Origin: Scyliorhinus canicula
Lineage: Eukaryota
Reading direction: 5' to 3'
Length of the DNA: 64,000 bases
NCBI RefSeq assembly: GCF_902713615.1
Contig: NC_052174.1
Location: forward strand, 14,068,514-14,132,513
Position numbers and translations under genes: made by a program. The notes under the pieces were generated by a model, which saw only the letters and a program-made list of their open reading frames with translations, was not told the origin of the DNA and made no database searches. Of this stretch, positions 2,261 through 53,710 are shown in pieces; position 1 is the first letter of the stretch, and each line of letters starts with the position of its first letter.

Positions 2261-5200
2261 CTGGAAGAGAAAAGTGCCAAAGATTAGGTCAGTTCAAGTC
2301 TCGCTTCAGGAGCCCGGGTGCATAGCCAGAGCTGGCCCCTGGGGGGCAGTGCTGAGGGGGGGGGGGGGGCTGCACTGTCAAGAGGCGTCACCTTTAGGAG
2401 ACTGCAAACAGAGGCCCTCTCGGACCTCCTCGGGGCGTTGCACAAACATCCCACAACCACAGGGGGGAGGCGACGGCGGTGTGGGCGCGGAATCCCGAGA
2501 CCCAGGGTAACGCCTGGCGGATCCGCGTTCGAATCCTGGCGCGGCAGAGGGGTGAAATTTTAATTCAATTAGAAAAAGAACAGAAATCTGGAAATTAAAA
2601 GATGACCGGGAAACTGATGTTGGCCGTCACAAGGAAGGAAATCTGCCGCCCTGCCCCGGTCTGGCCGACATGCGAATCCAGACCCACAGCAATGTGGCTG
2701 AATCTCGACGGCCCCTCTGAAATGGCTGAGCGAGCCGCTCACTTCAAGGGCCCATAATCACATGAATGAATGGTAAAATCTAACAGGGGCAGTGACGGAC
2801 GGGGGGATCTCCCCGGTGATCTGGCTGTGGGAGCCACCTTTCCTACATTACAGCAGGGACTGTACGTCAAAGGTGCACCGTGGCTCATTAAACAGCTTGG
2901 AACGTCCTTGTGAAAGGCCTGGTTCCTGCCATTCAGCCCATCACAAGACCATAAGAAATAGGTACGGGGCAGGCCATGTGGCCCCTCGAGCCGATTCAAT
3001 TGGATCATGGCCGATCCGACATTCCTCACGTCCACTTTCCCACCCTTTCCCCGTAATCCAAGATTCCCTCGCTGATCAACGATCTATCTCAGCCTTAAAT
3101 AGACTCTCCCCCCCAGCTCTCTCTGAGGCGAGGAATTCCAAAGCCCCGCAACCCTCCGAGGGAAGGAGTTCCCTCCTCATCCCACTCTGAAAGGGGCTCT
3201 GAATCTCCGCCCTCTGGTCCCAGACTCTCTCACGAGGGGCAACATCCTCTCCAGCATTTACCCTGTCAACCCCCTTAAAAATCCTCCAAGTTTCAATGGG
3301 ATCACCTCTCATTCTTCCGAATTCCGTTGAGTCTCAACCCGTTTAACCTTTGCTGGTAAGACAGTCCCCCCACACACCGGGGATCGCCCCAGTGAACCTT
3401 CTCTGAACCCCCGCCAATAAAATAATAGTTTTCCTTAAATCAGGAGACCGCCAGTGCTCCAGCTGTGACCTCACGAGCACCGTATCCAGTCGGAGCAAGA
3501 ATTCCCAACTTGAAATGAGGGCCAACGATCCGTTCTGCTTCCCGATTACCGCCGCACCGCTTTGTGTTTCGTACACAAGTGCCCCCCCCGGGTCCCTTTG
3601 TGTTGCAGCTCTCTGCAGTTTCTCGCCATTTATATAATACTCAGCTCTGTTGTTCTCCCTGCCAAAATGGACATTGCGTTTTCCCCACATTAAACTCCCC
3701 TTGCCACCATTCTGCCCACTTAATTAGCCTGTCAGTATCTCTTTGCAAACTGCCCGAATCCCCCTCACAACCTGCCTTTTCGCCTATTTTTGTGTCGATC
3801 TGTATCTCAACTCGACATTAACAATCTGACTGAAGGCACTGTTGCTAAGTTTGCAGATGATACAAAGATCTGCAGAGGGACAGGTAGTATTGAGGAAGCA
3901 GAGGGGTCTGTGGAAGGATTTGGACAGGCTAGGAGAGTGGGCAATGAAGTGGCAGATGGAATACAATGTGGAAAAGTGTGAGGTTATGCACTTTGGAAGG
4001 AGGAATGGAGGCATAGGCTATTTTCTAAATGGGCAAATGCTTAGGAAATCAGAAGCACAAAGGGACCTTGGGAGTCCTTGTTCACGATTCTCTTAAGGTT
4101 AACGTGCAGGTTCAGTCGGCAGTTAGGAAGGCAAATGCGATGTTAGCATTCACGTCGAGAGGGCTAGAATACAAGACCAGGGATGTACTTCTGAGGCTGT
4201 ATCAGGCTCTGGTCAGACCCCATTTGGGGTATTGTGAGCAGTTTTGGGCTCCGTATCTAAGGAAGGATGTGCTGGGCCTTGGAAAGGGTCCAGAGGAGGT
4301 TCACAAGAATGATCCCTGGAATGAAGGGCTTGTCACATGAGGAACAGTTGAGGACTCTGGGTCTGTACTCGTTGGAGTTTAGAAGGATGAGGGGGGATCT
4401 TATTGAAACTTACAGGATACTGCGAGGCCTGGATAGAGTGGATCTGGAGAGGATGTGTCCACTTGTAGGAAAAACTAGAAGCAGAGGATTCACCATCTCA
4501 GACTGAAGGGACGATCCTTTAAAACAGAGATGAGGAGGAATTTCTTCAGCCAGAGGGTGGTGAATCTGTGGAACTCTTTGCCGCAGAAGGCTGTGGAGGC
4601 CAAATCACTGAGTGTCTTTAAGACAGAGATAGATAGGTTCTTGATCAATAAGGGGATCAGGGGTTATGGGGAGAAGGCAGGAGAATGGGGATGAGAAAAT
4701 ATCAGCCATGATTGAATGGTGGAGCAGACTCGATGGGCCGAGTGGCCTAATTCTGCTCCTGTGTTATGGTCTTACTCCAACTACTTGGTTCCATAACCTT
4801 TAATAACCTAAACAGGTGGAGTTCCTCTAACCCGCCTCTCGAAAAGTGGAAATACCGAACCGAGGGAGTTTGTTTTTGGGAGGTGGGGGTTGCTGACTGT
4901 ACCTGATATGGGGGCTCCCAGGAGGCCCCCCACGCTCTCCAACATCTGCAGCAGTCCCAAAGCTCCGTAGATCCTCCCGATCCCGACGATCTCAGGCAGC
5001 AAGGAAAACACCACGGGCGTCAGGGCTCCGGCGCAGAAGCCATAGGCCACACTGATGGTCATCAGCGTGGAATAGGTGCGGGCGAACGGGATGGCAATCA
5101 GGCTGATCCCCGTCAGCAAGGTCCACAGCATCAGGATGTGGACTAGTCGCATCCTGCGCAGGTCGGAGAACCAGCCGGACAGGAGGCGGCCAATCAGGTC

Positions 5201-7263
5201 CATCACCCCCGCCACCGACATCAGGAACGCGGCCTTGTACTCATCGAAGCCGATGGAGCGGGCGTGGGCCACAAAGTGGACGTACGGCACAAAGTAGCCG
5301 GTGTTGATCAGGGTGATGGACAGCACCAAGGTCAGGAAGGGCCAGTGCTGGAGCAGGGTCAGGTCCAGCAGGTCGAAGATCATGCCCCCGGCTCCGCGGC
5401 AACAGGACGCCCCCCTGCCGCTCGGCCCCGGCGCCGCGCAGACCAGGTCCTCCTTCAGGGTCAGGGGTCGGATCAGGGCGCCGCAGACCATGAGGTTGAG
5501 CATCATGCCGGCGATGATGAGCAATGCCCCCCTCCACATGTACTCGTCAATCAGGTACTGGAAGAGCGGGGAGAAGACGAAAGAGCCGATGCCAACCCCG
5601 GTGAAAGACATCCCCATTGCCAGGGTCCGCCTCTTGTTAAAGTAGCGGCTAACTGCAGCAACGGCTGGGGTGAAGACCAAAGCCCAGCCAAAACCTGCCA
5701 AACAACAATAAATAATTACAGACAATTACAAACACCACTGAGATTCTCGAGGTGTCCACAGATCTCGGCGCTCTCGTAATTGAGTCACGAAAGTTAGTAT
5801 GCAGGTGCAGCAAGTAATTAAGGCGACTAATGATGTTTACAGCAGGGAAACAGGCCCTTCGGCCCAGCTTGTCCATGCCGCCCAGTTTCTATCACTAAGC
5901 TAGTCCCACTTGCCCGCATTTGGCCCATATCCCTCTGTACCCACCCTGCCCATGTAGCTGTCTAACTGCTTTTGAAAGGACAAAATTGTACCCACCTCTA
6001 CCACTACCCCTGGCAGCTCGTTCCAGACGCTCACCACCCTCTGCTTGAAGAAATGACCCTCAGGTCTACTTTGTATCTCTCCCCTCTCACCTTTAACCTC
6101 TGCCCTCTAGTTCTAGACTCCTCTACCTTTGGGAAAAGATATCTACCTTATCAATGCCCCTCATTATTTTATAGACCTCCATAAGATGGGTAGCATAGTG
6201 GTTAGCACTGCTGCTTCACAGCTCCAGGGTCCCAGGTCCGATTCCCGGCTTGGGTCACTGCCTGTGCGGAGCCTGCATGTTCTCCCCGTGTCTGCGTGTG
6301 TTTCCTCCGGGTGCTCCGGTTTTCTCCCACAGTCCAAAGATGGTTAGGTGGATTAGCCGTGATAAATTGCCCCTTAGTGTTGGGTGGGGTTACTGGGTTA
6401 TGGGGATAGGGTGGAGGTGTGGGCTTGGGTAGGGTGCTCTTTCCAAGAGCTGGTGCAGATTTGATGGGCCGAATGGCCTCCTTCTGCACTTTAAATTCTA
6501 TGAAGATCACCCCTCGGCCTCCTACGCTCCAGGGAAAAAAGTCCCAGCCTATCCAACCTCTCCTTATAACTCAAGACCATCAAATCCTGGTAGCATCCTC
6601 GTAAATCTCTTCCGCACTCTTTCTAGTTTAGCAACACCCTTCCTATAACAGGGTGACCAGAACTGAACACAGTATTCCAGGTGTGGTCTTGTACAACTTC
6701 AACAAGACGTCCCAACTCCTGTATTCAATATTCTGACCAATAAAACCTCACCTTCTTCACCACCCTGTCCACCTGCGGCTCCACCTTCAAGGAGCTATGA
6801 ACCTGTACCCCGAGATCTCTTTGTTCTGTTATTCTCCCCAACTCCCTAACCATTAACTGAGCAGGTCCTGCTATCCCTTATTAAGAAAGGAACTGAACAC
6901 AAGGGGAAAGATGTTACGCTTCAGATACACACACAGGGCGTTGGTGAGCCCACGCCTCGAATATTAAGAGAGGTTGTGGTCTCCTTATTTGAGGAAGGGT
7001 GTAAATGTGTCCGAGGTGGTTCACTGGACTGAAACCTGGAATGAGCGAGTTTTGTTATGAGGGGAGACACTAGGCCCGTTTCCACTGGGGTTGAGAAGAG
7101 GGAGGAGCCTGAAAGGTCTCGGCAAGGTGGATGTGGAAGACTAAGGGGGCACGGTTTGAAAATTGGGCGTCGCTCTTTTAGGGCAGCCATGAGGAGAATT
7201 GTTTCCCCTCCGAGGGTTGTGAGGCGTTGGAACCCGCTTCCTCGGAAGGCAGTGGAGGCCGTG

Positions 7264-13305: not shown

Positions 13306-13505
13306 NNNNNNNNNNNNNNNNNNNNNNNNNNNNNNNNNNNNNNNNNNNNNNNNNNNNNNNNNNNNNNNNNNNNNNNNNNNNNNNNNNNNNNNNNNNNNNN
13401 NNNNNNNNNNNNNNNNNNNNNNNNNNNNNNNNNNNNNNNNNNNNNNNNNNNNNNNNNNNNNNNNNNNNNNNNNNNNNNNNNNNNNNNNNNNNNNNNNNNN
13501 NNNNN
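13306..13505. other. Assembly gap (200 N)
   Basis: N run. Confidence 1.
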
Positions 13506-25800: not shown

Positions 25801-28800
25801 CTAACCACTAACTAGTATGGGCAAAATAAGACCAAATGGCGGGCCCCTGTGCTGTAAGATTATGGCCCCTGTTGCCGAGGTTATCTGACTGCACAAACTG
25901 GTGGCCAAAGGTTGGGTTTGACTGGTTTTGGACCACCTGGGCAGTGTTTAACCACCCCGAACCCCTCGGGTGTGGGAAGGGGGGGGGGTTAGATATATTC
26001 CTCACTCCTCGGTCAGAGGTGAGGAGCAGTGATCTAAACGTCAACCCGTCGATCATTGGGGACCAGCTGATGGTGAGTTCCTGATTCTGCCGTTGCTCTC
26101 GTTGGCGGTTCTGGGCCTTGCTGACGGTATTTCATTGCCAGGGCGCTGTGCTCGGTGTGGGGAGAACGTGGTTGGAGACGGCACGGGCTGCATCGCCATG
26201 GACCAAGTCTTTCACGTCGAGTGTTTCACCTGTATGACCTGTCGCTGCCGCCTGAGGGGCCAGCCTTTCTACGCCATCGACAAGAAATCATACTGCGAGT
26301 CCTGTTACATTGTAAGTAGCACGCAGCCGGTCACAACGTTGTAGCGCATTGCCAGTTACAATAAATGTAGAGCCCGTGGTAACTTGAGATGCACGTTGCA
26401 TGGGCAGATACAATACACATAGTGTGCAGCTGCTCACAACGCCTGTAGCTTGTGGCCATTTACAATGCACGTAGTAAGTTACGATGTCTGTGGCGCAGGC
26501 AGTTAAGATGCACTTAATGCAGAGCCTGTTCCGATGCATGTAGTGTGCAGCTGGTTACGATGCACGTAGCACAGGGATGTTACAATGCACATAGCCCGGG
26601 GACATTACCATGCCCGTGGTTCAGGGATGTTATGGTGCATGTAGTACACGGACGTTACGATGCCCGTAATGCACGGATAATAATCTTTATTGTCACAAGT
26701 AGGCTTACATTAACACTGCAATGAAGTTACTGTGAAAATCCCCTAGTCGCCACATTCCGGCGCCTGTTCGGATTCACAGAGGTAGAATTCAGAATGTCCA
26801 ATTCACCTAACAGCACGTCTTTCGGGACTTGTGGGAGGAAACCGGAGCACCCGGAGGAAACCCACGCAGACACAGAGAGAACGTGCAGACTCCTCACAGA
26901 CAGTGACCCAAACCGGGAATCGAACCCGGGACCCTGGCGCTGTGAAGCAATAGTGCTAACCACTGCGCTGCCGTGCTGCCTGTATGTTACGGTGCCCGTA
27001 GCACAGGGAAGTTAACAATGCTCGTAGTGCAGGTACGGTTTGGTGCACGTAACACGGGAGCGTTACGATGCCTGTAGTACAGGGGTGGGCAAACTACGGC
27101 CCGCGGGCCGCATGCGGCCCGCCAAAGGTATTTCTGCGGCCCACCAAGTCATTAAAAAAAAAAAAAAAAAATTTTTTTTTAAATTTTTTTTTTTTTTTTT
27201 TAATTTTTTAAAAAGTTAATGGGGGGGGGGCTGTTGGGTTACTTACTGGTATAGGGTGGATACGTTGACTTGAGTAGGGTGATCATTGCTCGGCACAACG
27301 TCGAGGGCCGAAGGGCCTGTTCTGTGCTGTACTGTTCTATGTTCTATATGAGGCGCCCAGAATCATAACCGGGTGAAGTAATTATTTTACTTAATATACT
27401 ATGCGGCCCTTTGTGAATTGTGAATTTCTGAATGTGGCCCTTGCACGGAAAAGTTTGCCCACCCCTGCTGTAGTATGTGGGCAGTTACAATGCATACCTG
27501 TGTCTCAGTGGGTCACCCGCCCAGCCATTTTCTATCGCATTGTCGGTCCAAACAATTGTAGCTTGACGTGAGAGCAAGAGAGAGAGAGAGCGAATGCATT
27601 TAGCTTAAATAATTCATTGATCCAGCGATACATTGAGCAAACATTGGGCTTCCCTGGATGAGCCCGATGCCTTCGATATTCCTCGAGCGCAGGGACACTT
27701 AACATTTCACCCTGTGCAAACCCAGCCAGATATCAAACCCTGGCCAATGCTGCCCTCCACAGGCCCTGACTGTTATTGCCACAATGTGCTCACTTTATCA
27801 GCACAGCTGGGCGATGAGCAGACTGCTGTTCTGTCTCTTTCAGAGTATTTGTGTCTTGCCTTAACTCTGAAACAGTGCCAAATGAGAGAGAGAGACAATA
27901 TGTCACCAGCACAATCACATTGCTAGTGGTGGGAGCTTGCTGTGCAGAAACTGGTGCCGTGTTTCATACATTCCAACAGGTAAAAGGTACCTCATCCCGA
28001 AATGGTGAACGATGCTATAGAAGTGCAGATTTGTTCTTGTGGTGCTTAATCGTCAACTCTAAGTAATGCACAGGAGTGCGGACCTGGATTATATGTTTGT
28101 GGGATCCTGCTGTGCCATCCCACTGCAGTGAGGGGCCTGGGGGGTGTACATTAGAAAGGGTGGTGACCGTCCAGCTTGTGAGAGAATTTTTATTCTGATA
28201 ATTTTATTCCATTTACTGTACAGAACACCCTGGAGCAATGTTCCGTCTGTTCCAAGCCCATTATGGACAGGATTCTACGTGCGATGGGCCGTGCCTATCA
28301 CCCACAGTGCTTCACCTGTGTGGTGTGTCACCAGTGCCTGGATGGGATTCCCTTCACTGTGGATGCTACCAGCCAGATTCACTGCATTGAGGATTTCCAC
28401 ATGTAAGTAACCCATGTGACATACAGAGTAAAGCTTCCTCCACACTGTCCCCATCAAACACTCCCAGGACAGGTACAGCACGGGGTTAGATACAGAGTAA
28501 AGCTCCCTCTACACAGTCCCCATCAAACACTCCCAGGACAGGTACAGCACGGGGTTAGATACAGAGTAAAGCTGCCTCTACACTGTCCACATCAAACATT
28601 CCCAGGACAGGTACAGCACGGGGTTAGATACAGAGTAAAGCTCCCCGTACACTATCCCCATCAAACACTCCCAGGACAGGTACAGCATGGGGTAGGGCAG
28701 CAAGTGGCGCAGTACGTTAGCCCTAGCCTCATGGCGCTGAGGTCCCAAGTTCGATCCTGGCCCTGGGTCACTGTCCGTGTGGAGTTTGCACATTCTCCCC

Positions 28801-31138
28801 ATGTTTGTGTGGGTTTCACCCCCACAACCCAAAGATGTGCAGGGTAGGTGGATTGGCCACCCTAAATTGCCCCTTAAGTGGAAAAGAAAAATAATTGGAT
28901 ACTCTAAATTTATATTTAAAAAAAAAGATAGCATGGGGTTAGATACTGACCCTCTGACAGTGCAGCACTCCCTCAGTACTGACCCTCTGACAGTGCAGCA
29001 CTCCCTCAGTACTGACCCTCTGACAGTGCGGCACTCCCTCAGTACTGACCCTCTGACAGTGCAGCACTCCCTCAGTACTGACCCTCTGACAGTGCGGCAC
29101 TCCCTCAGTACTGACCCTCTGACAGTGCGGCACTCCCTCAGTACTGACCCTCTGACAGTGCGGCACTACCTCAGTACTGACCCTCTGACAGTGCAGCACT
29201 CCCTCAGTACTGACCCTCTGACAGTGCGGCACTCCCTCAGTACTGACCCTCTGACAGTGCAGCACTCCCTCAGTACTGACCCTCTGACAGTGCGGCACTC
29301 CCTCAGTACTGACCCTCTGACAGTGCGGCACTCCCTCAGTACTGACCCTCTGACAGTGCGGCACTCCCTCAGTACTGACCCTCTGACAGTGCAGAGCGTC
29401 TGGCCAACCTATGCGCTCAAATCTCTGGATTGGAACTTGAACAATCTCTGGGGAGAGGGTGCTGGGTTTCTGCTGAATTTCGTATTGGGTTAATTAGTGA
29501 TTGGTTCGTGTTTATGATTCGGTTTTGACCTGCCCCACACATGGACCCAGTGTTGCTCCGAACTACTTGATGCCGTAGCTGAGGGGTGTTGTGTGATTTG
29601 TATCTTCACAGGAAGTTTGCTCCGCGCTGTTCAGTTTGTGCCAAGCCCATCATGCCTGAGGCTGGACAGGAGGAAACTGTGCGGATTGTTGCCCTGGATC
29701 GCAGCTTTCATGTCAACTGTTACAAGTGTGAGGTAAGAGCTCTGTGTCACAGGCAGGGGACACTTTCCCTGATTGTAGACGATGAAGGGGGGGGGAGGGG
29801 TCTAATCAAGCTGGGGGCAGGGACATGGGAACAGGACTAGGCCATTCGGCCCGTCGAGCCTGCTCCGCCATTCAGGTTCAGCATGGTTGACCGTTTACCT
29901 CCATCACAATCCCCCCTCCCCCAATCCCTTGATATCATTGGTCTCCAGAAATCTATTGGCTTCTGCCTTGAACCTGCTCGATGATTGAGCTTCCCCAGCC
30001 CTCTGGGTTGAGGAATGCCACAGGTTCACGACCCTCTGAGTGAAGAAATTCCTCCTCATCTCAGTCCCTAAATGGCCGACCCCTTATCCTGGGATTGCGT
30101 CCCCTGCTTTTCGACAGACCAGCCAGGGGGAAACATCTCGAGTACATCCAGCCTGTCGAGCCCTTTTAGAAGTGCGTAAGTCTCACTGAGATCACCCCTC
30201 ATTCCTCCAAATTCGACGGAATATGGGCCCAGTCTCCTCAATGTCTCCTCACAAGATAATCCCGCCACCCCTCGGATTAGTCTGGGGAACCTCCGCTGCA
30301 CTCCCTCTCTGGGAATATATCTGTCCTACAAACAGGAGGCCCGTATAGTGCACAATACTCCGGGTGAGGTGTCACCAAGACATCTTTATTCCTGTCCTCC
30401 AAGCCCCTTGCGATGAAGGCCAATTTGCCTTCCTAATTCCTTGCTGCTCCTGCCTGCGAGCTTTCAGTGGCTCGTGAACAAGGACACCCTTTGGACACCA
30501 ACACTTCCCAATCTCCCACCCTTTAAAGAATACTCTGCCTTTCTGTTCTTTCTACCAAAGTGGGTAACTTGACATTTATTCACATTATAGTCCATCGGCC
30601 ACGTCCTTGCTCATTCGCTTCGCCTGTCGAACTAGCCTTGAAGCTTCCTTGTGTCCTCCTCACAACTCCCATTCTCACCGAGTTTTGTGTGATTGGAAAT
30701 TTGGCAATGTTGCATTTTGTCCCAATATCCTCGCGCGGGGGGGGGGGGGGGGGGGGGGTGCTGAATTGGTCGCCTCCTGTGCTCTGCCGTCACAGGGCTG
30801 GTCCTGAGATCTTGTTCTGCGCAAACCTCTGCCTGGCCTCCCGCGTCACTGAAATGGTTACCTCAGAACAGCGCCATGGGCCCTGGGAAGGGATTGGGAG
30901 CTTTGTCGAGGTGGGGAAAGGTGCTATTTCAACGGGAGCTCTTTGAAATGTCTGTGAGCCGCTGCCTCCTCTTGACTCATCCCGTGTCCGTTCTGACCTC
31001 CCGCAGGACTGCGGCTTCGTCCTGTCGTCGGAGGGGGAGGGGTGTGGCTGCTACCCGCTGGACGGCCACATCCTGTGCAAGACCTGCAGCTCGCGAAGAA
31101 TTCAGGACCTCTCCGCCAAAATCACCACCGACTGCTGA
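13624..31138 (+). CDS. TRIP6: TRIP6 (zyxin/LPP family LIM protein), 665 aa. Exons 13624-13837, 21389-21546, 22079-22198, 22350-23132, 24133-24253, 26142-26311, 28224-28402, 29612-29732, 31007-31138
   Basis: Starts [10 protein letters not shown]; [20 protein letters not shown]; [21 protein letters not shown]; three LIM domains; ends TTDC, which is TRIP6-type (LPP ends STDL). Exon lengths sum to 1998 nt in frame, all introns GT-AG. Confidence 0.93.
13990..16700 (-). mobile_element. Long CR1 LINE fragment interrupted by SINEs
   Basis: [38 protein letters not shown] on the minus strand. Confidence 0.88.
17166..18065. repeat. Composite GC-rich array shifting from 12/20-bp units to 16-bp GGGTGCCGGGCGCTGT
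   Basis: Direct inspection. Confidence 0.95.
18458..19378 (+). repeat. 33-bp minisatellite ACTGTCAGAGGGTCAGTACTGAGGGAGTGCCGC
   Basis: About 28 copies, followed by Deu-SINE-like sequence. Confidence 0.95.
19800..21325. mobile_element. Dispersed LTR-like repeat, homologous to about 24700-25590
   Basis: Shared blocks such as cctgcagat..gcctgtgtca.actactg and acatcttaattgcac..ttgcagccacag. Confidence 0.5.
19992..20213 (+). mobile_element. Short AT-tailed V-SINE variant with long TSDs. Other copies near 16810-17033, 20495-20729, 25600-25808, 28694-28929, 32771-32995, 35627-35820, 36240-36438, 36815-37040, 38260-38440, 45740-45887, 47745-47967, 56270-56490
   Basis: tRNA head plus V core; TSDs AAAATCC(A/C)CTTTTAA, TTACAAAGGCTAAACAT, GTTTATACAGAGCA. 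Confidence 0.85.
21389..21546 (+). CDS. TRIP6: TRIP6 coding exon 2
   Basis: tggtag acceptor, gtgagg donor; phase 1 to 0 links exons 1 and 3; [15 protein letters not shown] resembles the TRIP6 N-terminal region. Confidence 0.7.
22079..22198 (+). CDS. TRIP6: TRIP6 coding exon 3 (nuclear export signal)
   Basis: [18 protein letters not shown]; ttgcag acceptor, gtgaga donor. Confidence 0.9.
22350..23132 (+). CDS. TRIP6: TRIP6 coding exon 4 (Pro/Tyr-rich, 261 codons)
   Basis: ORF 22377-23189; tttcag acceptor, gtaaga donor. Confidence 0.88.
24133..24253 (+). CDS. TRIP6: TRIP6 coding exon 5 (pre-LIM)
   Basis: [27 protein letters not shown]; gtgagt donor. Confidence 0.92.
26142..26311 (+). CDS. TRIP6: TRIP6 LIM1 exon
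   Basis: CARC...[11 protein letters not shown]...YCESCY. Confidence 0.93.
26678..26979 (-). mobile_element. SINE variant with (ATT)n tail. Other copies 14835-15125, 46990-47450, 31910-32040; different-head form at 20785-20944 and 47148-47335
   Basis: tRNA head plus GTGGCGACTAGGGG..TTCACAGTAACTTCATT...GTGACAATAA tail. Confidence 0.75.
27080..27467. mobile_element. hAT (Charlie-like) MITE
   Basis: 16-bp TIR CAGGGGTGGGCAAACT; perfect 8-bp TSD CTGTAGTA. Confidence 0.88.
28224..28402 (+). CDS. TRIP6: TRIP6 LIM2 exon
   Basis: [35 protein letters not shown]...HCIEDFH. Confidence 0.93.
28418..28693. repeat. 69-bp tandem repeat (4 copies)
   Basis: TACAGAGTAAAGCTCCCTCTACAC...GGGGTTAGA. Confidence 0.9.
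28944..29393 (-). repeat. 33-bp minisatellite, same unit as 18458, reversed
   Basis: About 14 copies. Confidence 0.95.
29612..29732 (+). CDS. TRIP6: TRIP6 LIM3 exon a
   Basis: [40 protein letters not shown]. Confidence 0.93.
29830..30730 (-). mobile_element. CR1 LINE fragment
   Basis: QRRFPRLI...MRGDLSETY. Confidence 0.75.
31007..31138 (+). CDS. TRIP6: TRIP6 last coding exon (end of LIM3, PDZ-binding TTDC)
   Basis: [43 protein letters not shown]. Confidence 0.93.
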   Translation, partial: DCGFVLSSEGEGCGCYPLDGHILCKTCSSRRIQDLSAKITTDC

Positions 31139-40127: not shown

Positions 40128-40235
40128 ATTGGTACACCGTCCGCCCAATTAAATCGCAGCACCAATCAGAGAGTGAGGAGCGTGGGGGGCTTTGCTTGTG
40201 ACGTGATTGCTACCTCGCCTGAGGGGGTATATAAA
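40128..40235 (+). promoter_or_regulatory. Somatostatin proximal promoter
   Basis: TATATAAA 40228-40235; CRE-like TGACGTGA 40199-40206; CCAAT boxes at 40128 (reverse), 40145 and 40162. Confidence 0.75.
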
Positions 40236-40361
40236 GCAGGTAAATCGCAGGGCTGGAGTTGGTCAGAGCAGTTACACAGAGAAGCTCGCCTCTTGCCCAC
40301 ACTGCCCGACGAGACAGTTTGCCAATCGCTCCCATCCGCAGTAAGAAAATCAGAGCTCGAG

Positions 40362-40493
40362 ATGCCGAGATCGCAGACTCAAGTCCTCCTCACTCTGGTC
40401 ACTGTCGCTCTGCTGTTACTGCGGGGATCGAGTACAGCCAGAGTGCAGGGGCTGCCCGATATCTTACAGGAGAGGAACGACGAGGGGACTGAG
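40362..40493 (+). CDS. SST: Somatostatin exon 1 (signal peptide, 44 codons)
   Basis: ATG about 125 nt downstream of the TATA box; strong gtaaga donor. Confidence 0.87.
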
Positions 40494-43400
40494 GTAAGAC
40501 AGATACCCCTATAAAATCTCCATCCTGTTGCGCTGGCGCAGGTTAACCCCAGACACTCCATTCTGCACTCTATTTAACCCGTTAAGATCCAGCACTTAAC
40601 ATAATTTAAATGCATAATTTTGTTTAGTTTATTGCTGGAATCCATCTCAATTTAATTTCAACATGTTCGAGAGCTAAAATATTGAAGGGAGCTGGATTAT
40701 CAGTAGGGATACAGTCAGTAACACAGGGCGCTGGGGGAGAGGGGTTACTGAGTGACAGTGTGAGGGAGCTGGGTTAACATCAGTAGAGATACAGTCAGTA
40801 ACACAGGGTGCTGGGGGAGAGGGGTTACTGAGTGACAGTGTGAGGGAGCTGGATTAACATCAGTACAGATACAGTCAGTAACACAGGGTGCTGGGGGAGA
40901 GGGGTTACTGAGTGACAGTGTGAGGGAGCTGGATTAACATCAGTAGAGATACAGTCAGTAACACAGGGTGCTGGGGGAGAGGGGTTGCTGAATGACAGTG
41001 TGAGGGAGCTGGATTAACATCAATACAGATACAGTCAGTAACATAGGGTGCTGGGGGAGAGGGGTTACTGAGTGACAGTGTGAGGAAACTGGATTAACAT
41101 CAGTAGAGATACAGTCAGTTACACGGGGTGCTGGGAGGAGAGGGGTTACTGAGTGACAGTGTGAGGGAGCTGGATTAACATCAGTAGAGATACAGTCAGT
41201 AACACAGGGTGCCGGGGGAGAGGGGTTACTGAGTGACAGTGTGAGGGAGCTGGATTAACATCAGTAGAGATACAGTCAGTAACGGTGCTGGGGGAGAGGG
41301 GTTACTGAGCGACAGTGTGAGGGAGCTGGATTAACATCAGTAGAGATACAGTCAGTAACACAGGGTGCTGGGGGAGAGGGATTACTGAGTGACAGTGTGA
41401 GGGAGCTGGATTAACATCAGTAGAGATACAGTCAGTAACACAGGGTGCTGGGGGGAGAGGGGTTACTGAGTGACAGTGTGAGGGAGCTGGATTAACATCA
41501 GTAGAGATACAGTCAGTAACACAGGGTGCTGGGGGAGAGGGGTTACTGAGTGACAGTGTGAGGGAGCTGGATTAACATCAGTAGAGATACAGTCAGTAAC
41601 ACAGGGTGCTGGGGGGAGAGGGGTTACTGAGTGACAGTGTGAGGGAGCTGGATTAACATCAGTAGAGATACAGTCAGTAACACAGGGTGCTGGGGGGAGA
41701 GGGGTTACTGAGTGACAGTGTGAGGGAGCTGGATTAACATCAGTAGAGATACAGTCAGTAACACAGGGTGCCGGGGGGAGAGGGGTTACTGAGTGACAGT
41801 GTGAGGGAGCTGGATTAACTTTGATCTCTAGTTGGCAGAGAGCAGTGTTTGAGAAGATGGGGGATTTGCTTACAGAGGGGAGCTTTCCGAGTATTAGGAC
41901 GCTGGAGGAGAAGTTTGGGTTGGCGAGGGGAAACAAATTCAGGTATCTGCAGGTGCGGGACTTCCTACGTAAACAGGTTCAACCTTCCCGCTCCTACCGC
42001 TAAGGGAGATTCAGGGCAGGGTAGTTTCCAGAGGATGGAAAGGGGAAGGGAGTGTCTGACATTTACAATGAATTTATGGGGGTCAGAGGAGACACAGACT
42101 GAGGAGCTGAAGCGCAAGTGGGAGGAGGAGCTGGGAGGAGAGGTAGAGGATGGTCTATGGACGGACGCGCTGTGTAGAGTCAACGCATCTGCAACATGCG
42201 CCAGGCTCAGCCTGATATAATTTAAGGTTGTTCACCGGGCTCACACGACAGTGGCCCGGATGAGCAGATTCTTTGGGGTGGAGGACAGTTGCGCAAAATG
42301 TGCGGGAGGACCAGCGATCCATGTCCACATGTTCTGTACATGTCCGAAGCTTAGGGGATTTTGGTAGGGGTTTGCGGATGTCATGTCCACGGTGTTAAAA
42401 ACAAGGCTGGCACTAAGTCCAGAGGTGGCGATTTCCAGGGTGTCGGAAGACCCGGGAATCCAGGAGGAGAAAGAGGCAGACGTTCTGGCCTTTGCTTCCC
42501 TGGTAGCCCGGAGACGGATACTATTCGCTTGGAGGGACTCAAAGCCCCCGAACTCGGAGACCTGGCGATCGGACATGGCTAGCTTTCTCTGTTTGGAGAA
42601 AATCAAGTTCGCCTCGAGAGGGTCACTGTTTGGGTTCGCCCGGAGGTGGCAGCCGTTCGTCCACTTCTTCGTGGAAAATTAATCGTCAGCAGAAGGTGGG
42701 GGGGTTAGTTTAGCTTGGAGTAGGGGGTTAATAAAGGTTGGACCTGTAAGGGAGAGAGATGGCTTTTGCACTATGTTTATAGATTCATGTACATTGTTTA
42801 TTGTGTTGTTGTTATAATATCAAAAATACCTCAATAAAATGTTTATTTAAAAAAAAACATTGGTCTCTAGTTTAAAGATTGCCTGCTTTAGGGACAGCAG
42901 GATTCTATCAGGCACAGGAAAATATTGGTTCGAAGACGAGATCACAGAATCACAGAAATACACACTGCAGAGAAGGCCCTTCAGCCCATCCAGTCTGTAC
43001 CGACACCTGACCTGCCGACCTAATCCCATTGGCCAGCACTTGGCCCATAGCCTTGAATGTTACGGCGTGCCAAGTGTTCATCCAGGTACTTTGTAAAGGA
43101 TGTGAGGCAACCCGCCTCTACCCCCCTCCCAGGCAGTGCGTTCCAGACCCTCACCACCCTCTGGGTAAAAAGGTTTTTCCTCAAATGCCCCCCTAAACCT
43201 CCTGTCCCTCACCTTGAACTTGTGTTCCCCTCGTGACTGACCCTTCAACTAAGGGGAACCACTGCTCCCTATCCCATCCTGACCACGCCCCTCATAATCC
43301 TGTCCACCTCGGGCTGGTCGCCCCTCAGTCTTCTCTGCTCCAGAGAAAACAACCCAAGCCTATCCAACCTCTCTTCATAACTGAAACGTTCCATCCCAGG

Positions 43401-45311
43401 GAACATCCTGGTGAATCTCCTCTGCACCCCCTCCAGCGCAATCACATCCTTCCTATAATGTGGCGACGAGAACTACACCCAGTGCTCCAGCTGTGGCCTC
43501 ACCAAAGTTCTATACAACTCCAGCATGACCTCCCTGCTTTTGTAATCTGTGCCTCGATTGATAAAGGCAAGTGTCCCATATACCTTTTTCCCCCACCATC
43601 TTATCAACCAGCACTTCTGCCTTCAGAGATCTGTGGACAAACACGCCGAGGTCTCTTTGTTCCTCGGAACATTCCTGTGTGGTGCCATTCGTTGAATACT
43701 TACTGATCTGATTAGCTTCCATTGAAAGAGAATGTTGACGGAAAGAAAAACATGTGGGGTGGGAAATTTAGAAATGAGTGTGTGAGAAAGGAGAGATGTA
43801 ATAGGGTTAGGTGGCAGTGGGAGTGGTTAACCGAAAAGAGCGGGAGATGGAATAAAATGAGATAACACCGAAATCAGATTTAATTGCTACTTTATTCCAC
43901 AACCTCATTGACATGATGTTTGCTGTAGTTCAGTAACACTCTTCCAATATCTCATCTCTAAGATTGTGGATTTAAGACCCACTCCAAATACCTCAGCACC
44001 AAACACAGACCCTTAATCTCAGTGTAGTCCTGAGAGACTGCTGTATTGTCAGAGGGTCAGTACTGAGGGAGTGCCGCACTGTCAGAGGGTCAGTACTGAG
44101 GGAGTGCCGCACTGTCAGAGGGTCAGTACTAAGGGAGTGCCGCACTGTCAGAGGTTCAGTACTGAGGGAGTGCCGCACTGTCAGAGGGTCAGTACTGAGG
44201 GAGTGCCGCACTGTCAGAGGGTCAGTACTGAGGGAGTGCCGCACTGTCAGAGGGTCAGTACTGAGGGAGCACCGCACTGTCAGAGGGTCAGTACTGAGGG
44301 AGTGCCGCACTGTCAGAGGGTCAGTACTGAGGGAATGCCGCACTGTCAGAGGGTCAGTACTGAGGGAGTGCCGCACTGTCAGAGGGTCAGTACTGAGGGA
44401 GTGCTGCACTGTCAGAGGGTCAGTACTGAGGGAGTGCCGCACTGTCAGAGGGTCAATACTGAGGGAGTGCCGCACTGTCAGAGGGTCAGTACTGAGGGAG
44501 TGCTGCACTGTCAGAGGGTCAGTACTGAGGGAGTGCCGCACTGTCAGAGGGTCAGTACTGAGGGAATGCCGCACTGTCAGAGGGTCAGTACTGAGGGAGT
44601 GCCGCACTGTCAGAGGGTCAGTACTGAGGGAATATTTGGTATTAAATGAAGACCCCACCTTCTCTTTCAGGCTGACTCCACAGTCAGCATTTAAAGAGAT
44701 GAGGGCTGAGGGGGGAAGTGGGTGGGGTCGGTCGGTTTGGGGGGGATAAGGTAGTTCACCCCTTTGTCCTGGGGGCTAATATTTACCCTTCATTCAATAT
44801 CTCAAAAAGAAAATAAGAGATGGGTCCTTGCTACTTTGCTTTGTGGGATCTTGCTGTGTACAAATGGTGTGTGTGTGTGGGGGGGGATATAACAGTGGCC
44901 AACAGCTAATTGTTTAATAAAAAGGTGCTGCATTGTCTGCGAGGTGCTCTGGAAGATGTGCGTGGGGGTGGGGGACATGCTGGGGATGTGCCAGGCGCTA
45001 CACCAATAGAACAATGGAACATTACAGCGCAGTACAGGCCCTTCGGCCCTCGATGTTGCGCCGACCTGTGAAACCATTCTAAAGCCCATCTACACTATTC
45101 AAATGCCAGTGTTGTGTTGTGTTTACAGGAGCTGTCCAGGACCATGGTGCTGAACCTCCTCTCCGAGCTGCTCCATGCTGGGGACAAGGGGTTGCCCAGC
45201 ACCGAGAGACGGGAGCTTCCCCAGGCTGAGATCGTCCGCCGGTGGAACTCACCGCGGGACCGCAAAGCAGGCTGCAAGAACTTCTTTTGGAAAACCTTCA
45301 CCTCTTGTTAA
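40362..45311 (+). CDS. SST: Preprosomatostatin, 104 aa, exons 40362-40493 and 45129-45311; probably the SS5-type paralogue
   Basis: Hydrophobic signal peptide [26 protein letters not shown]; phase-0 intron GAG|gtaaga...ttacag|GAG; C-terminus [16 protein letters not shown] is canonical SS-14. Confidence 0.93.
40686..41818. repeat. About 80-bp minisatellite in the somatostatin intron
   Basis: About 14 copies of GGGAGCTGGATTAACATCAGTAGAGATACAGTCAGTAACAC...GACAGTGTGA. Confidence 0.95.
41820..42857 (+). mobile_element. L1-clade LINE 3' fragment in the somatostatin intron
   Basis: [13 protein letters not shown]...[27 protein letters not shown] and A-tail. Confidence 0.82.
42942..43700 (-). mobile_element. 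CR1 LINE fragment in the somatostatin intron
   Basis: [14 protein letters not shown]; CR1 3' UTR. Confidence 0.8.
44047..44630 (+). repeat. 33-bp minisatellite, same unit as 18458
   Basis: About 18 copies with Deu-SINE-like flanks. Confidence 0.95.
45129..45311 (+). CDS. SST: Somatostatin exon 2 (propeptide plus SS-14)
   Basis: [15 protein letters not shown]...[18 protein letters not shown]. Confidence 0.96.
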
Positions 45312-45602
45312 CGTGCGGAGAGAGAGGGAAAGAGAAAGTGAGCCGGCGGGGGGAGAGATATAAAGAGAATTCCTCCCTCTCCCAAAACCTATCTTCAGCT
45401 CCTGAAGGGAGGCAAAAAAAATCAATTGCCTCTATCTTGTAGATTTTAAGATTCACAAATCCCAACCACCTCCGTCCCTCGAAAGATTGCCTCCCCCTTT
45501 GGGCTGCCTCTCCGCTGAGGATTTCTCTGTGTCTTTATCCAAGGTGTTTGTAAATGATTGACTTGTTTGCTTTGTTCTCTGAGCATGGACTTGCTCTCAC
45601 AC

Positions 45603-45608
45603 AATAAA
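45603..45608 (+). terminator. Somatostatin polyadenylation signal
   Basis: AATAAA about 290 nt after the stop. Confidence 0.7.
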
Positions 45609-45887
45609 ATATCTTTATTTCTCAGCAACCTCCACGACTTTGTGTTCCTTTCTGCCCTCTCTCTGACTGGGAATCCATCCCTGCACCACCTTCCACACTC
45701 ATACCCAGCTCCCCTCTAAAAATCTAATCGGTTATGTGAACATTTTTGGGTTGTGGGGGGTGAAACCCACGCAGACACAGGGAGAATGTGCAAACTCCAC
45801 ACGGACAGTGACCCAGAGCCGGGATCGAACCTGGGACCTCGGCGCCATGAGGCAGCAGGGCTAACTCAATGCGCCACCGTGCTGCCT

Positions 45888-49819: not shown

Positions 49820-50019
49820 NNNNNNNNNNNNNNNNNNNNNNNNNNNNNNNNNNNNNNNNNNNNNNNNNNNNNNNNNNNNNNNNNNNNNNNNNNNNNNNNN
49901 NNNNNNNNNNNNNNNNNNNNNNNNNNNNNNNNNNNNNNNNNNNNNNNNNNNNNNNNNNNNNNNNNNNNNNNNNNNNNNNNNNNNNNNNNNNNNNNNNNNN
50001 NNNNNNNNNNNNNNNNNNN
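49820..50019. other. Assembly gap (200 N)
   Basis: N run. Confidence 1.
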
Positions 50020-50049: not shown

Positions 50050-53000
50050 CTCAGTGTGTGTGGGACCCGTACCCCAGTGAGAGTCAGTGTGTGTGGGACC
50101 CGTACCCCAGTGAGAGTCAGTGTGTGTGGGACCACAGTGAGAGTCAGTGTGTGTGGGTCCCCAGTGAGAGTCAGTGTGTGTGGGACCCGTACCCCAGTGA
50201 GAGTCAGTGTGTGTGGGTCCCGTACCCCAGTGAGAGTCAGTGTGTGTGGGACCCGTACCCCAGTGAGAGTCAGTGTGTGTGGGACCCGTACCCCAGTGAG
50301 AGTCAGTGTGTGTGGGACCCGTACCCCAGTGAGAGTCAGTGTGTGTGGGACCCGTACCCCAGTGAGAGTCAGTGTGTGTGGGACCCGTACCCCAGTGAGA
50401 GTCAGTGTGTGTGGGACCCGTACCCCAGTGAGAGTCAGTGTGTGTGGGACCCGTACCCCAGTGAGAGTCAGTGTGTGTGGGACCCGTTACCCCAGTGAGA
50501 GTCAGTGTGTGTGGGACCCGTACCCCAGTGAGAGTCAGTGTGTGTGGGACCCGTACCCCAGTGAGAGTCAGTGTGTGTGGGACCCGTACCCCAGTGAGAG
50601 TCAGTGTGTGTGGGACTCATACCCCAGTGAGAGTCAGTGTGTGTGGGACCCGTACCCCAGTGAGAGTCAGTGTGTGTGGGACCCGTACCCCAGTGAGAGT
50701 CAGTGTGTGTGAGACCTGTACCCCAGTGAGAGTCAGTGTGTGTGGGACCCATACCCCAGTGAGAGTCAGTGTGTGTGGGACCCGTACCCCAGTGAGAGTC
50801 AGTGTGTGTGGGACCCGTACCCCAGTGAGAGTCAGTGTGTGTGGGACCCGTACCCCAGTGAGAGTCAGTGTGTGTGGGACCTGTACCCCAGTGAGAGTCA
50901 GTGTGTGTGGGACCCCAGTGAGAGTCAGTGTGTGTGGGACCCGTACCCCAGTGAGAGTCAGTGTGTGTGGGACCCGTACCCCAGTGAGAGTCAGTGTGTG
51001 TGGGACCCCAGTGAGAGTCAGTGTGTGTGGGACCCGTACCCCAGTGAGAGTCAGTGTGTGTGGGACACGTACCCCAGTGAGAGTCAGTGTGTGTGGGACC
51101 CGTACCCCAGTGAGAGTCAGTGTGTGTGGGACCCGTACCCCAGTGAGAGTCAGTGTGTGTGGGACCCCGTACCCCAGTGAGAGTCAGTGTGTGTGGGACC
51201 CGTACCCCAGTGAGAGTCAGTGTGTGTGGGACCCGTACCCCAGTGAGAGTCAGTGTGTGTGGGACCCTGTACCCCAGTGAGAGTCAGTGTGTGTGGGACC
51301 CGTACCCCAGTGAGAGTCAGTGTGTGTGGGACCCGTACCCCAGTGAGAGTCAGTGTGTGTGGGACCCGTACCCCAGTGAGAGTCAGTGTGTGTGGGACCC
51401 GTACCCCAGTGAGAGTCAGTGTGTGTGGGACCCGTACCCCAGTGAGAGTCAGTGTGTGTGGGACCCGTACCCCAGTGAGAGTCAGTGTGTGTGGGACCCG
51501 TACCCCAGTGAGAGTCAGTGTGTGTGGGACCCGTACCCCAGTGAGAGTCAGTGTGTGTGGGACCCGTACCCCAGTGAGAGTCAGTGTGTGTGGGACCCGT
51601 ACCCCAGTGAGAGTCAGTGTGTGTGGGACCCGTACCCCAGTGAGAGTCGGTGTGTGTGGGACCCGTACCCCAGTGAGAGTCAGTGTGTGTGGGACCCGTA
51701 CCCCAGTGAGAGTCAGTGTGTGTGGGACCCGTACCCCAGTGAGAGTCAGTGTGTGTGGGACCGTACCCCAGTGAGAGTCAGTGTGTGTGGGACCCCGTAC
51801 CCCAGTGAGAGTCAGTGTGTGTGGGACCCGTACCCCAGTGAGAGTCAGTGTGTGTGGGACCCGTACCCCAGTGAGAGTCAGTGTGTGTGGGACCCGTACC
51901 CCAGTGAGAGTCAGTGTGTGTGGGACCCGTACCCCAGTGAGAGTCAGTGTGTGTGGGACCCGTACCCAGTGAGAGTCAGTGTGTGTGGGACCCGTACCCC
52001 AGTGAGAGTCAGTGTGTGTGGGACCCGTACCCCAGTGAGAGTCAGTGTGTGTGGGACCCGTACCCCAGTGAGAGTCAGTGTGTGTGGGACCCGTACCCCA
52101 GTGAGAGTCAGTGTGTGTGGGACCCGTACCCCAGTGAGAGTCAGTGTGTGTGGGACCCGTACCCCAGTGAGCGTCAGTGTGTGTGGGACCCGTACCCCAG
52201 TGAGAGTCAGTGTGTGTGGGACCCGTACCCCAGTGAGAGTCAGTGTGTGTGGGACCCGTACCCCAGTGAGAGTCAGTGTGTGTGGGACCCGTACCCCAGT
52301 GAGAGTCAGTGTGTGTCAGTCTGTACCCCAGTGAGAGTCAGTGTGTGTGGGACCCAGTACCCCAGTGAGAGTCAGTGTGTGTGGGACCCGTACCCCAGTG
52401 AGAGTCAGTGTGTGTGGGACCCGTACCCCAGTGAGAGTCAGTGTGTGTGGGGCCCGTACCCCAGTGAGAGTCAGTGTGTGTGGGACCCGTACCCCAGTGA
52501 GAGTCAGTGTGTGTGGGACCCGTACCCCAGTGAGAGTCAGTGTGTGTGGGACCCGTACCCCAGTGAGAGTCAGTGTGTGTGGGAACCCATACCCCAGTGA
52601 GAGTCAGTGTGTGTGGGACCCGTACCCCAGTGAGAGTCAGTGTGTGTGGGACCCGTACCCCAGTGAGAGTCAGTGTGTGTGGGACCCGTACCCCAGTGAG
52701 AGTCAGTGTGTGTGAGACCCGTACCCCAGTGAGAGTCAGTGTGTGTGGGACCCGATACCCCAGTGAGAGTCAGTGTGTGTGGAACCCGTACCCCAGTGAG
52801 AGTCAGTGTGTGTGGGACCCGTACCCCAGTGAGAGTCAGTGTGTGTGGGACCCGTACCCCAGTGAGAGTCAGTGTGTGTGGGACCCGTACCCCAGTGAGA
52901 GTCAGTGTGTGTGGGACCCGTACCCCAGTGAGAGTCAGTGTGTGTGGGACCCGTACCCCAGTGAGAGTCAGTGTGTGGGACCCGTACCCCAGTGAGAGTC

Positions 53001-53710
53001 AGTGTGTGTGGGACCCGTACCCCAGTGAGAGTCAGTGTGTGTGGGACCCGTACCCCAGTGAGAGTCAGTGTGTGTGGGACCCCAGTGAGAGTCAGTGTGT
53101 GGAACCCGTACCCCAGTGAGAGTCAGTGTGTGTGGGACCCGTACCCCAGTGAGAGTCAGTGTGTGTGGGACCCGTACCCCAGTGAGAGTCAGTGTGTGTG
53201 GGACCCGTACCCCAGTGAGAGTCAGTGTGTGTGGGACCCGTACCCCAGTGAGAGTCAGTGTGTGTGGGACCCGTACCCCAGTGAGAGTCAGTGTGTGTGG
53301 GACCCGTACCCCAGTGAGAGTCAGTGTGTGTGGGACCGTACCCCAGTGAGAGTCAGTGTGTGTGGGACCCCAGTGAGAGTCAGTGTGTGGGACCCGTACC
53401 CCAGTGAGAGTCAGTGTGTGTGGGACCACCAGTGAGAGTCAGTGTGTGTGGGACCCGTACCCCAGTGAGAGTCAGTGTGTGTGGGACCCGTACCCAGTGA
53501 GAGTCAGTGTGTGTGGGACCCGTACCCCAGTGAGAGTCAGTGTGTGTGGGACCCGTACCCCAGTGAGAGTCAGTGTGTGTGGGACCCGTACCCCAGTGAG
53601 AGTCAGTGTGTGTGGGACCCCAGTGAGGGTCAGTGTGTGTGGGACCCGTACCCCAGTGAGAGTCAGTGTGTGTGGGACCCGTACCCCAGTGAGAGTCAGT
53701 GTGTGGAACT
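50050..53710. repeat. 3.7-kb 33-bp satellite CAGTGTGTGTGGGACCCGTACCCCAGTGAGAGT
   Basis: About 110 highly homogeneous copies next to the gap. Confidence 0.97.

Follow-up and report, generated by a model that had tools for sequence, protein, structure and literature searches.

We analysed a stretch of 64,000 nucleotides from the catshark Scyliorhinus canicula (NC_052174.1; hereafter the window, in whose coordinates all positions are given), which carries a complete somatostatin gene downstream of a gene that we identified as TRIP6. The analyses indicated that the somatostatin gene is almost certainly the intact somatostatin-5 (SS5) gene of this species, PSST5 (formerly ScPSSb), and that it has kept its ancestral place beside TRIP6. 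The structure, splicing, transcription, orthology and synteny of the gene are all supported by the results shown here. According to published reviews, somatostatin-1 (SS1), SS2 and SS5 are products of two early vertebrate genome duplications. The features of the gene are given below; the two promoter elements were read from the sequence, and the exons were placed from the translation and from contigs of public runs (X1 and X4), taken to be RNA, that were aligned to positions 40150-45750.

40199..40206, plus strand: octamer resembling a cAMP-response element, TGACGTGA, one base from the canonical TGACGTCA and ~25 bp 5' of the TATA box
40229..40237, plus strand: TATA box, TATATAAAG
40277..40493, plus strand: exon 1, comprising the 5' untranslated region (UTR) from ~40277 and the coding sequence 40362-40493 (residues 1-44); translation, X1 and X4 contigs
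40494..45128, plus strand: single intron of 4,635 bp, GT..AG, its acceptor ...TGTTTACAG followed directly by the GAG of exon 2; join seen in X1 and X4
45129..45311, plus strand: exon 2 coding sequence, residues 45-104 and the stop codon TAA at 45309-45311
45237-45242, plus strand: RR site, Arg81-Arg82, in exon 2
45261-45266, plus strand: RK site, Arg89-Lys90, in exon 2
45267-45308, plus strand: coding sequence of somatostatin-14 (SS-14), the last 14 residues of the precursor
45312..45628, plus strand: 3' UTR, with AATAAA at 45603-45608; contigs end at 45616-45628

The contigs indicated that this two-exon gene is transcribed and correctly spliced. One contig of 693 nt from run X1 and one of 725 nt from run X4, which belong to separate studies, both omit precisely 4,635 bp bounded by GT..AG (blocks ~40277/40297-40491, then 45127-45616/45625), and a contig from a third study (run X2), spanning the entire exon 2 and the 3' UTR, gave partial support. 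A cDNA record also exists. Expression had been left to be checked by the sequence-only reading, an earlier interpretation of the same DNA made without database searches, and the spliced contigs from two studies supplied that check. The start ATG lies at 40362, the donor GTAAGA directly 3' of 40493, and the span from ATG to stop (4,950 bp) is the same as that of the gene call in assembly GCA_902713615.2. The contigs start at 40277 and 40297, in keeping with a start site ~30-45 bp 3' of the TATA box, and the mature mRNA is ~0.7 kb long with its 3' end 8-20 nt past the poly(A) signal. The near-consensus TGACGTGA is a putative cAMP-response element, a function suggested by the promoters of SST1 genes.

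Relative to the assembly, both spliced contigs have 8 extra bases (TCTCCCAC) after position 40334 in the 5' UTR, a difference attributable to a polymorphism or to a minor error in the assembly. The intron was found to consist mostly of repeats, including an 80-bp tandem array of 14 copies (40686-41819) and a second, 33-bp array of 18 copies (44026-44631), both identified by Tandem Repeats Finder, with transposon fragments filling further sequence.

The spliced coding sequence translates to a 104-residue preprosomatostatin ending in RDRK followed by SS-14, so that the complete precursor with a canonical hormone proposed by the sequence-only reading was borne out. Pfam PF03002 (Somatostatin) matched residues 87-104 (E 1.4e-11; 44.5 bits against a cut-off of 20.3), and the C-x-N-F-F-W-K-T-F-x-x-C core that defines this family stands at the C-terminus with the stop codon next to it. 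As expected of a secretory precursor, the translation has a hydrophobic run at residues 8-20 and Arg89-Lys90 directly before Ala91. Exon 1 encodes the predicted signal peptide (~residues 1-26) and the start of an acidic, leucine-rich pro-region. This pro-region has a different 10-residue stretch in place of the SANSNP..APRERK segment typical of somatostatin-28 (SS-28), which every SS1 precursor shown by Feng et al. (PMC7073721, Fig. S2) carries. Comparison with those precursors upheld the earlier claim that the pro-region diverges from SS1 and lacks the SS-28 extension.

Together, these features suggest a TATA-driven, two-exon gene whose ~0.7-kb mRNA would be translated into a 104-residue secreted prohormone. 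Based on established prohormone biology, the signal peptide would be removed, and the basic sites suggest that prohormone convertases may cut after Arg89-Lys90 to release SS-14. As this peptide is identical to the SS1 product, it would act on the same somatostatin receptors.

An exact look-up showed that the 104-residue protein is that of AGC23334.1, UniProt L7SSJ7 ("Prepro-somatostatin b") and XP_038642842.1, all from S. canicula. The gene is therefore already known and no discovery is claimed: its cDNA dates from 2013, its naming as SS5 from 2019, and its brain expression was mapped in 2019-2020. Quan et al. (2013) are cited for the cloning of the cDNA of AGC23334.1 (ScPSSb), and Tostivint et al. 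(2019) are cited in bioRxiv 10.1101/823187 as having shown that ScPSSb is PSST5. Sobrido-Camean et al. (bioRxiv 10.1101/823187) reported that SST1 and SST5 of the catshark have the same mature peptide, in agreement with the hormone identity stated by the sequence-only reading. By in situ hybridisation the same authors found PSST5 mRNA only within the entopeduncular nucleus region and in a few preoptic cells, whereas PSST1 was widespread.

The sequence-only reading had also called for a separate SST1 in the same genome and had warned that the SS5 gene was prone to be annotated as SST1. Both points were sound. A 113-residue SST1 ("prepro-somatostatin a", XP_038673132.1) lies on a 163-Mb sequence of GCA_902713615.2, and the SS5 gene lies on a 16-Mb sequence; RefSeq names both "somatostatin-1A-like". 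In gar, sturgeon, bichir and most teleosts the RefSeq name of SS5 is "somatostatin-1", "-1A" or "somatostatin", and true teleost SS1 is named "somatostatin 1, tandem duplicate 1". Nearly every fish examined has its SS5 under a somatostatin-1 or -1A name. Automated studies that compare species or measure expression can be misled by this shared naming of SST1 and SST5.

Database searches with the precursor returned full-length matches in cartilaginous fishes only, at 94% identity in Scyliorhinus torazame and 41-79% in other sharks and rays, with the processing sites invariant across sharks and rays. Profile searches identified a second set of co-linear precursors of 100-110 residues in gar, bowfin, paddlefish, sturgeon, bichir, coelacanth, lungfish and many teleosts, distinct from the 113-116-residue SS1 of the same species. 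Two of these, from Ictalurus punctatus (P0161) and Astyanax mexicanus (P0139), are letter-for-letter the SST5 of Feng et al. (2020; PMC7073721, Fig. S2). In global alignments, the catshark pro-region scored 72-121 against SS5-type precursors, 50-59 against SS1-type precursors and 53.5 against the catshark's own SST1, to which it is ~30% identical.

A maximum-likelihood tree was built from 46 sequences over ~100 columns, with catshark SST1 and SST3 copied from Fig. S2 of PMC7073721. On one side of a branch with 100/100 support were the window protein, its nine orthologues from sharks and rays, 17 SS5 proteins of bony fishes and a newt protein; on the other were 16 SS1 proteins together with catshark SST1 and SST3. 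In the approximately unbiased (AU) test, forcing all shark sequences into a single clade cost 43.7 log-likelihood units (p-AU 0.0008). The splits demanded by two other constraints, the window group with SS1 and the newt protein P0143 with SS1, were compatible with the best unrooted tree. The sequence-only reading had argued for an SS5-type gene over SS1 and had accepted that a grouping of the precursor with SS1 would count against it. The tree split, the AU test, the TRIP6 synteny and the published identity as PSST5 all agree with its choice, and catshark SST1 and SST3 fell on the SS1 side. A reading of raw DNA from its letters had reached the right orthology call.

The neighbouring LIM-domain gene was mapped by tblastn of proteins named TRIP6 from alligator, gecko, cod and axolotl against the window:

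13624..31138, plus strand: TRIP6 gene, 8 coding pieces over 17.5 kb
~13624-13836, 22028-22183, 22461-23084 and 24148-24264, plus strand: TRIP6 coding pieces 1-4
26141-26317, plus strand: LIM1
28224-28400, plus strand: LIM2
29604-29729, plus strand: first half of LIM3
31004-31138, plus strand: second half of LIM3, including the stop codon

The product has the proline-rich N-terminal half, the three C-terminal LIM domains and the TTDC end of a TRIP6 protein. Pfam LIM matched two of the exons, and the third LIM domain was recognised by tblastn. The last coding exon ends at 31135 (stop codon 31136-31138) with the C-terminus ...SAKITTDC, and TTDC is the PDZ-binding C-terminal motif of TRIP6 (PMC9957548). 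In a HMMER search with the 288-residue proline-rich exon, the named matches were TRIP6 proteins of alligator, gecko, cod and axolotl, whose C-termini agree; the exception was lungfish, in which a single gene has isoforms named "LPP homolog" as well as isoforms named "TRIP6-like". The best matches of the LIM exons in the PDB were LIM1 and LIM2 of human TRIP6. Because LIM domains of LPP and zyxin are missing from the PDB, these matches cannot separate TRIP6 from LPP, and the identity was therefore based on the TTDC motif and the named orthologues. Judged by these, the neighbour is TRIP6 and not LPP; had it proved to be LPP, the sequence-only reading would have been undermined. In the public assembly the called TRIP6 product has 665 residues.

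The distance from the TRIP6 stop codon to the somatostatin ATG is 9,224 bp, with equal spacing in GCA_902713615.2. The only runs of N in the window are at 13306-13505 and 49820-50019, neither of them between the two genes, so that the earlier statement of an ungapped distance of about 9 kb was accurate. In sawfish and sevengill shark, the TRIP6 orthologue lies 6-8 kb upstream of the SS5 orthologue on the same strand, and in gar it lies 5 kb from SS5. The last exons of the LIM genes in these three species are 84-98% identical to that in the window and end in I[TS]TDC. Trip6 also immediately adjoins SST5 on fugu chromosome 8 and zebrafish chromosome 7 (Feng et al. 2020; PMC7073721, Table S3), and the linkage of TRIP6 and SST5 is thus already in published teleost synteny tables. 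Adjacency to TRIP6 is therefore common to the SS5 genes of the catshark, sawfish, sevengill shark, gar, fugu and zebrafish. For lungfish the adjacency is indirect, in that the accession of the SS5-type protein (XP_043933007.1) comes directly after those of the TRIP6-like isoforms (XP_043932996-XP_043933006).

The arrangement in gar (CM082494.1; 760-3920, 16564-21586) differs from that in sharks and sawfish: TRIP6 is downstream of SS5 and in opposite orientation, where theirs is upstream and on the same strand, which implies that one lineage has undergone a local inversion. The sequence-only reading had also suggested looking for BCL6B near the gene, and none was seen within the 64-kb window. 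The other gene flanking SS5 in gar was considered as a candidate BCL6B, which it probably is not: Pfam identified only C2H2 fingers, and its N-terminus has no BTB-like sequence.

Several points weigh against the assignment of the gene as a functional SS5 orthologue. The tree is unrooted and was built without SS2, SS4 or SS6 sequences, so that the case for orthology of the shark and bony-fish genes depends on combining the tree with their common neighbour TRIP6. The gar TRIP6 is oriented opposite to the shark arrangement. The runs that showed the splicing were merely guessed to be RNA, and a raw oligo-dT RNA run (X23) had no reads over the somatostatin exons; this last result was to be expected, and is uninformative, because PSST5 is expressed in very few cells. 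Processing of the peptide is a prediction from basic sites, and the studies of Quan et al. (2013) and Tostivint et al. (2019) are known to us through citing papers only.

Of the other explanations, the one that survives best, although we consider it very unlikely, is that the early duplications gave rise to the shark gene separately, so that it and bony-fish SS5 are not orthologues, and that the two lineages underwent reciprocal losses. The unrooted tree would accommodate this, in that the shark clade and the clade of bony-fish SS5 are separate and meet at a node of near-zero length. However, both groups adjoin the same TRIP6 orthologue, whereas hidden paralogy predicts neighbours of the LPP or zyxin type, and the pro-region architecture is common to both over its whole length.

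We find it barely credible that the gene is a duplicate of SS1 specific to cartilaginous fishes, comparable to the tandem duplicate SS3, which merely resembles bony-fish SS5. Its hormone is as in SS1, and trees of ~100 columns can mislead because the sequences are short and fast-evolving. Nevertheless, the AU test rejected a single shark clade, the catshark SST1 sits on another chromosome, and the TRIP6 neighbour is common to the SS5 genes of gar, fugu and zebrafish.

The proposal that the gene represents SS1, whether as its orthologue, as an allele or as an assembly copy, is so improbable that we regard it as refuted. It draws on the identity of SS-14 to that of SS1 and on the NCBI naming of the gene and all its orthologues as somatostatin-1 or -1A-like, but a different, 113-residue SST1 is present on another chromosome-sized sequence of the same assembly, the 100/100 branch sets SS1 apart from the window protein, and the low pro-region identity to catshark SST1 and the absence of the SS-28 segment are at odds with it. 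An unexpressed relic with a chance open frame, to which the repeat-swollen intron and the absence of exon reads in X23 might point, is refuted by the spliced contigs of two studies and the partial contig of a third, by the cDNA clone and the detection by in situ hybridisation, and by the conservation seen in S. torazame and across sharks and rays, and we give it practically no weight.

With the gene taken as SS5, its precursor could have a second product. An alternative cut at the conserved Arg81-Arg82 could yield an N-extended form of 22 residues, W-N-S-P-R-D-R-K followed by SS-14, and we consider it possible, if doubtful, that the shark SS5 precursor releases this lineage-specific peptide besides SS-14. 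The Arg-Arg pair and the octapeptide after it are near-invariant in sharks and sawfish; the exceptions are the sevengill shark, in which H-R-L replaces R-R-W, and a skate, which retains R-R-W with the next residues altered. Bony-fish SS5 precursors have a different segment at this position. If this speculation is correct, the 22-residue peptide could have a receptor preference or stability of its own, and thus give SS5 a function absent from SS1.

SS5-like precursors with a canonical SS-14 were observed in the newt Pleurodeles waltl (P0143; KAJ1080252.1 / XP_069072227.1; 103 residues) and in the lungfish Protopterus annectens (P0110; XP_043933007.1; 102 residues). The newt pro-region scored 112.5 against that of catshark SS5, where SS1-type precursors scored 50-59, and in the tree, which had no SS2, the newt protein had a long branch and was grouped with SS5 by the 100/100 split. 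According to published papers, tetrapods have lost SS5, and the gene is recorded solely from cartilaginous fishes, ray-finned fishes and the coelacanth; no description of an amphibian SS5 was found in the literature searched. A possible amphibian SS5 in Pleurodeles is a lead, not a result, and given the claimed loss in tetrapods it is the most interesting side lead of this work.

A separate contig of run X2 matched only 33 peptide-coding bases of the gene (45272-45304), and its flanks translate to [Pro2]-SS-14 followed by a stop codon. As [Pro2]-SS-14 is the catshark SST6 peptide (bioRxiv 10.1101/823187), the mRNA of this paralogue is present in that run. The 33-bp repeat family of the somatostatin intron was also observed in two TRIP6 introns (~18430-19380 and ~28950-29400). 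It is open in two frames and was covered to very high depth by contigs of transcript-like runs, from which we infer a dispersed, transcribed satellite or the tail of a short interspersed element of the catshark genome. In addition, ~3 kb of short tandem repeats (50600-53700) lie just past the N gap at 49820-50019; the open reading frame listing gave multi-frame reading frames on both strands there, with translations that include ...THTDSHWGTGP... and ...PYPSESQCVWD... One further gene was recognised in the window:

4811..5725, minus strand: large exon of a monocarboxylate-transporter (SLC16/MFS) gene, head-to-head with TRIP6; Pfam MFS_1 5.8e-23

The best PDB matches of this exon were MCT2 and MCT1 (1e-33 to 1e-28), which place it at the level of the family and not of a paralogue.

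Among known systems, the gene in the window is the same as the published S. canicula ScPSSb/PSST5, being identical in sequence, span and neighbour spacing; the sole discrepancy is the 8-nt 5' UTR insertion in the transcript contigs. The SS5 precursors of bony fishes (gar P0113, bichir P0124, sturgeon P0121, coelacanth P0090, lungfish P0110 and teleosts such as I. punctatus P0161) have 100-110 residues, like that of the catshark, and share with it a co-linear S-Q-x-Q-V-L-L signal region, L-x-D-L-L-Q and E-G-K-E-[ED]-L-S-R-x-L-x-L-K, a basic site ~10 residues ahead of R-K, the lack of an SS-28 segment and the TRIP6 neighbour. They differ in having R-Q-L-P-x-x-Q-R-E-R-K where sharks have another 10-residue stretch. 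Position 4 of the peptide is Arg in the SS5 of gar, bowfin and teleosts and Lys in that of sharks, paddlefish, sturgeon, bichir, coelacanth and lungfish. Vertebrate SS1, including catshark PSST1, shares the SS-14 peptide, the R-K cleavage site, the two-exon gene and the PF03002 C-terminus. In contrast to SS5, it has 113-116 residues (in non-teleosts) and a conserved SS-28 N-terminal segment, is located on another chromosome, and is widely expressed in the brain, where expression of PSST5 is very restricted. The hormone being the same, the retained SS5 duplicate therefore differs from SS1 in regulation and expression domain and not in its ligand.

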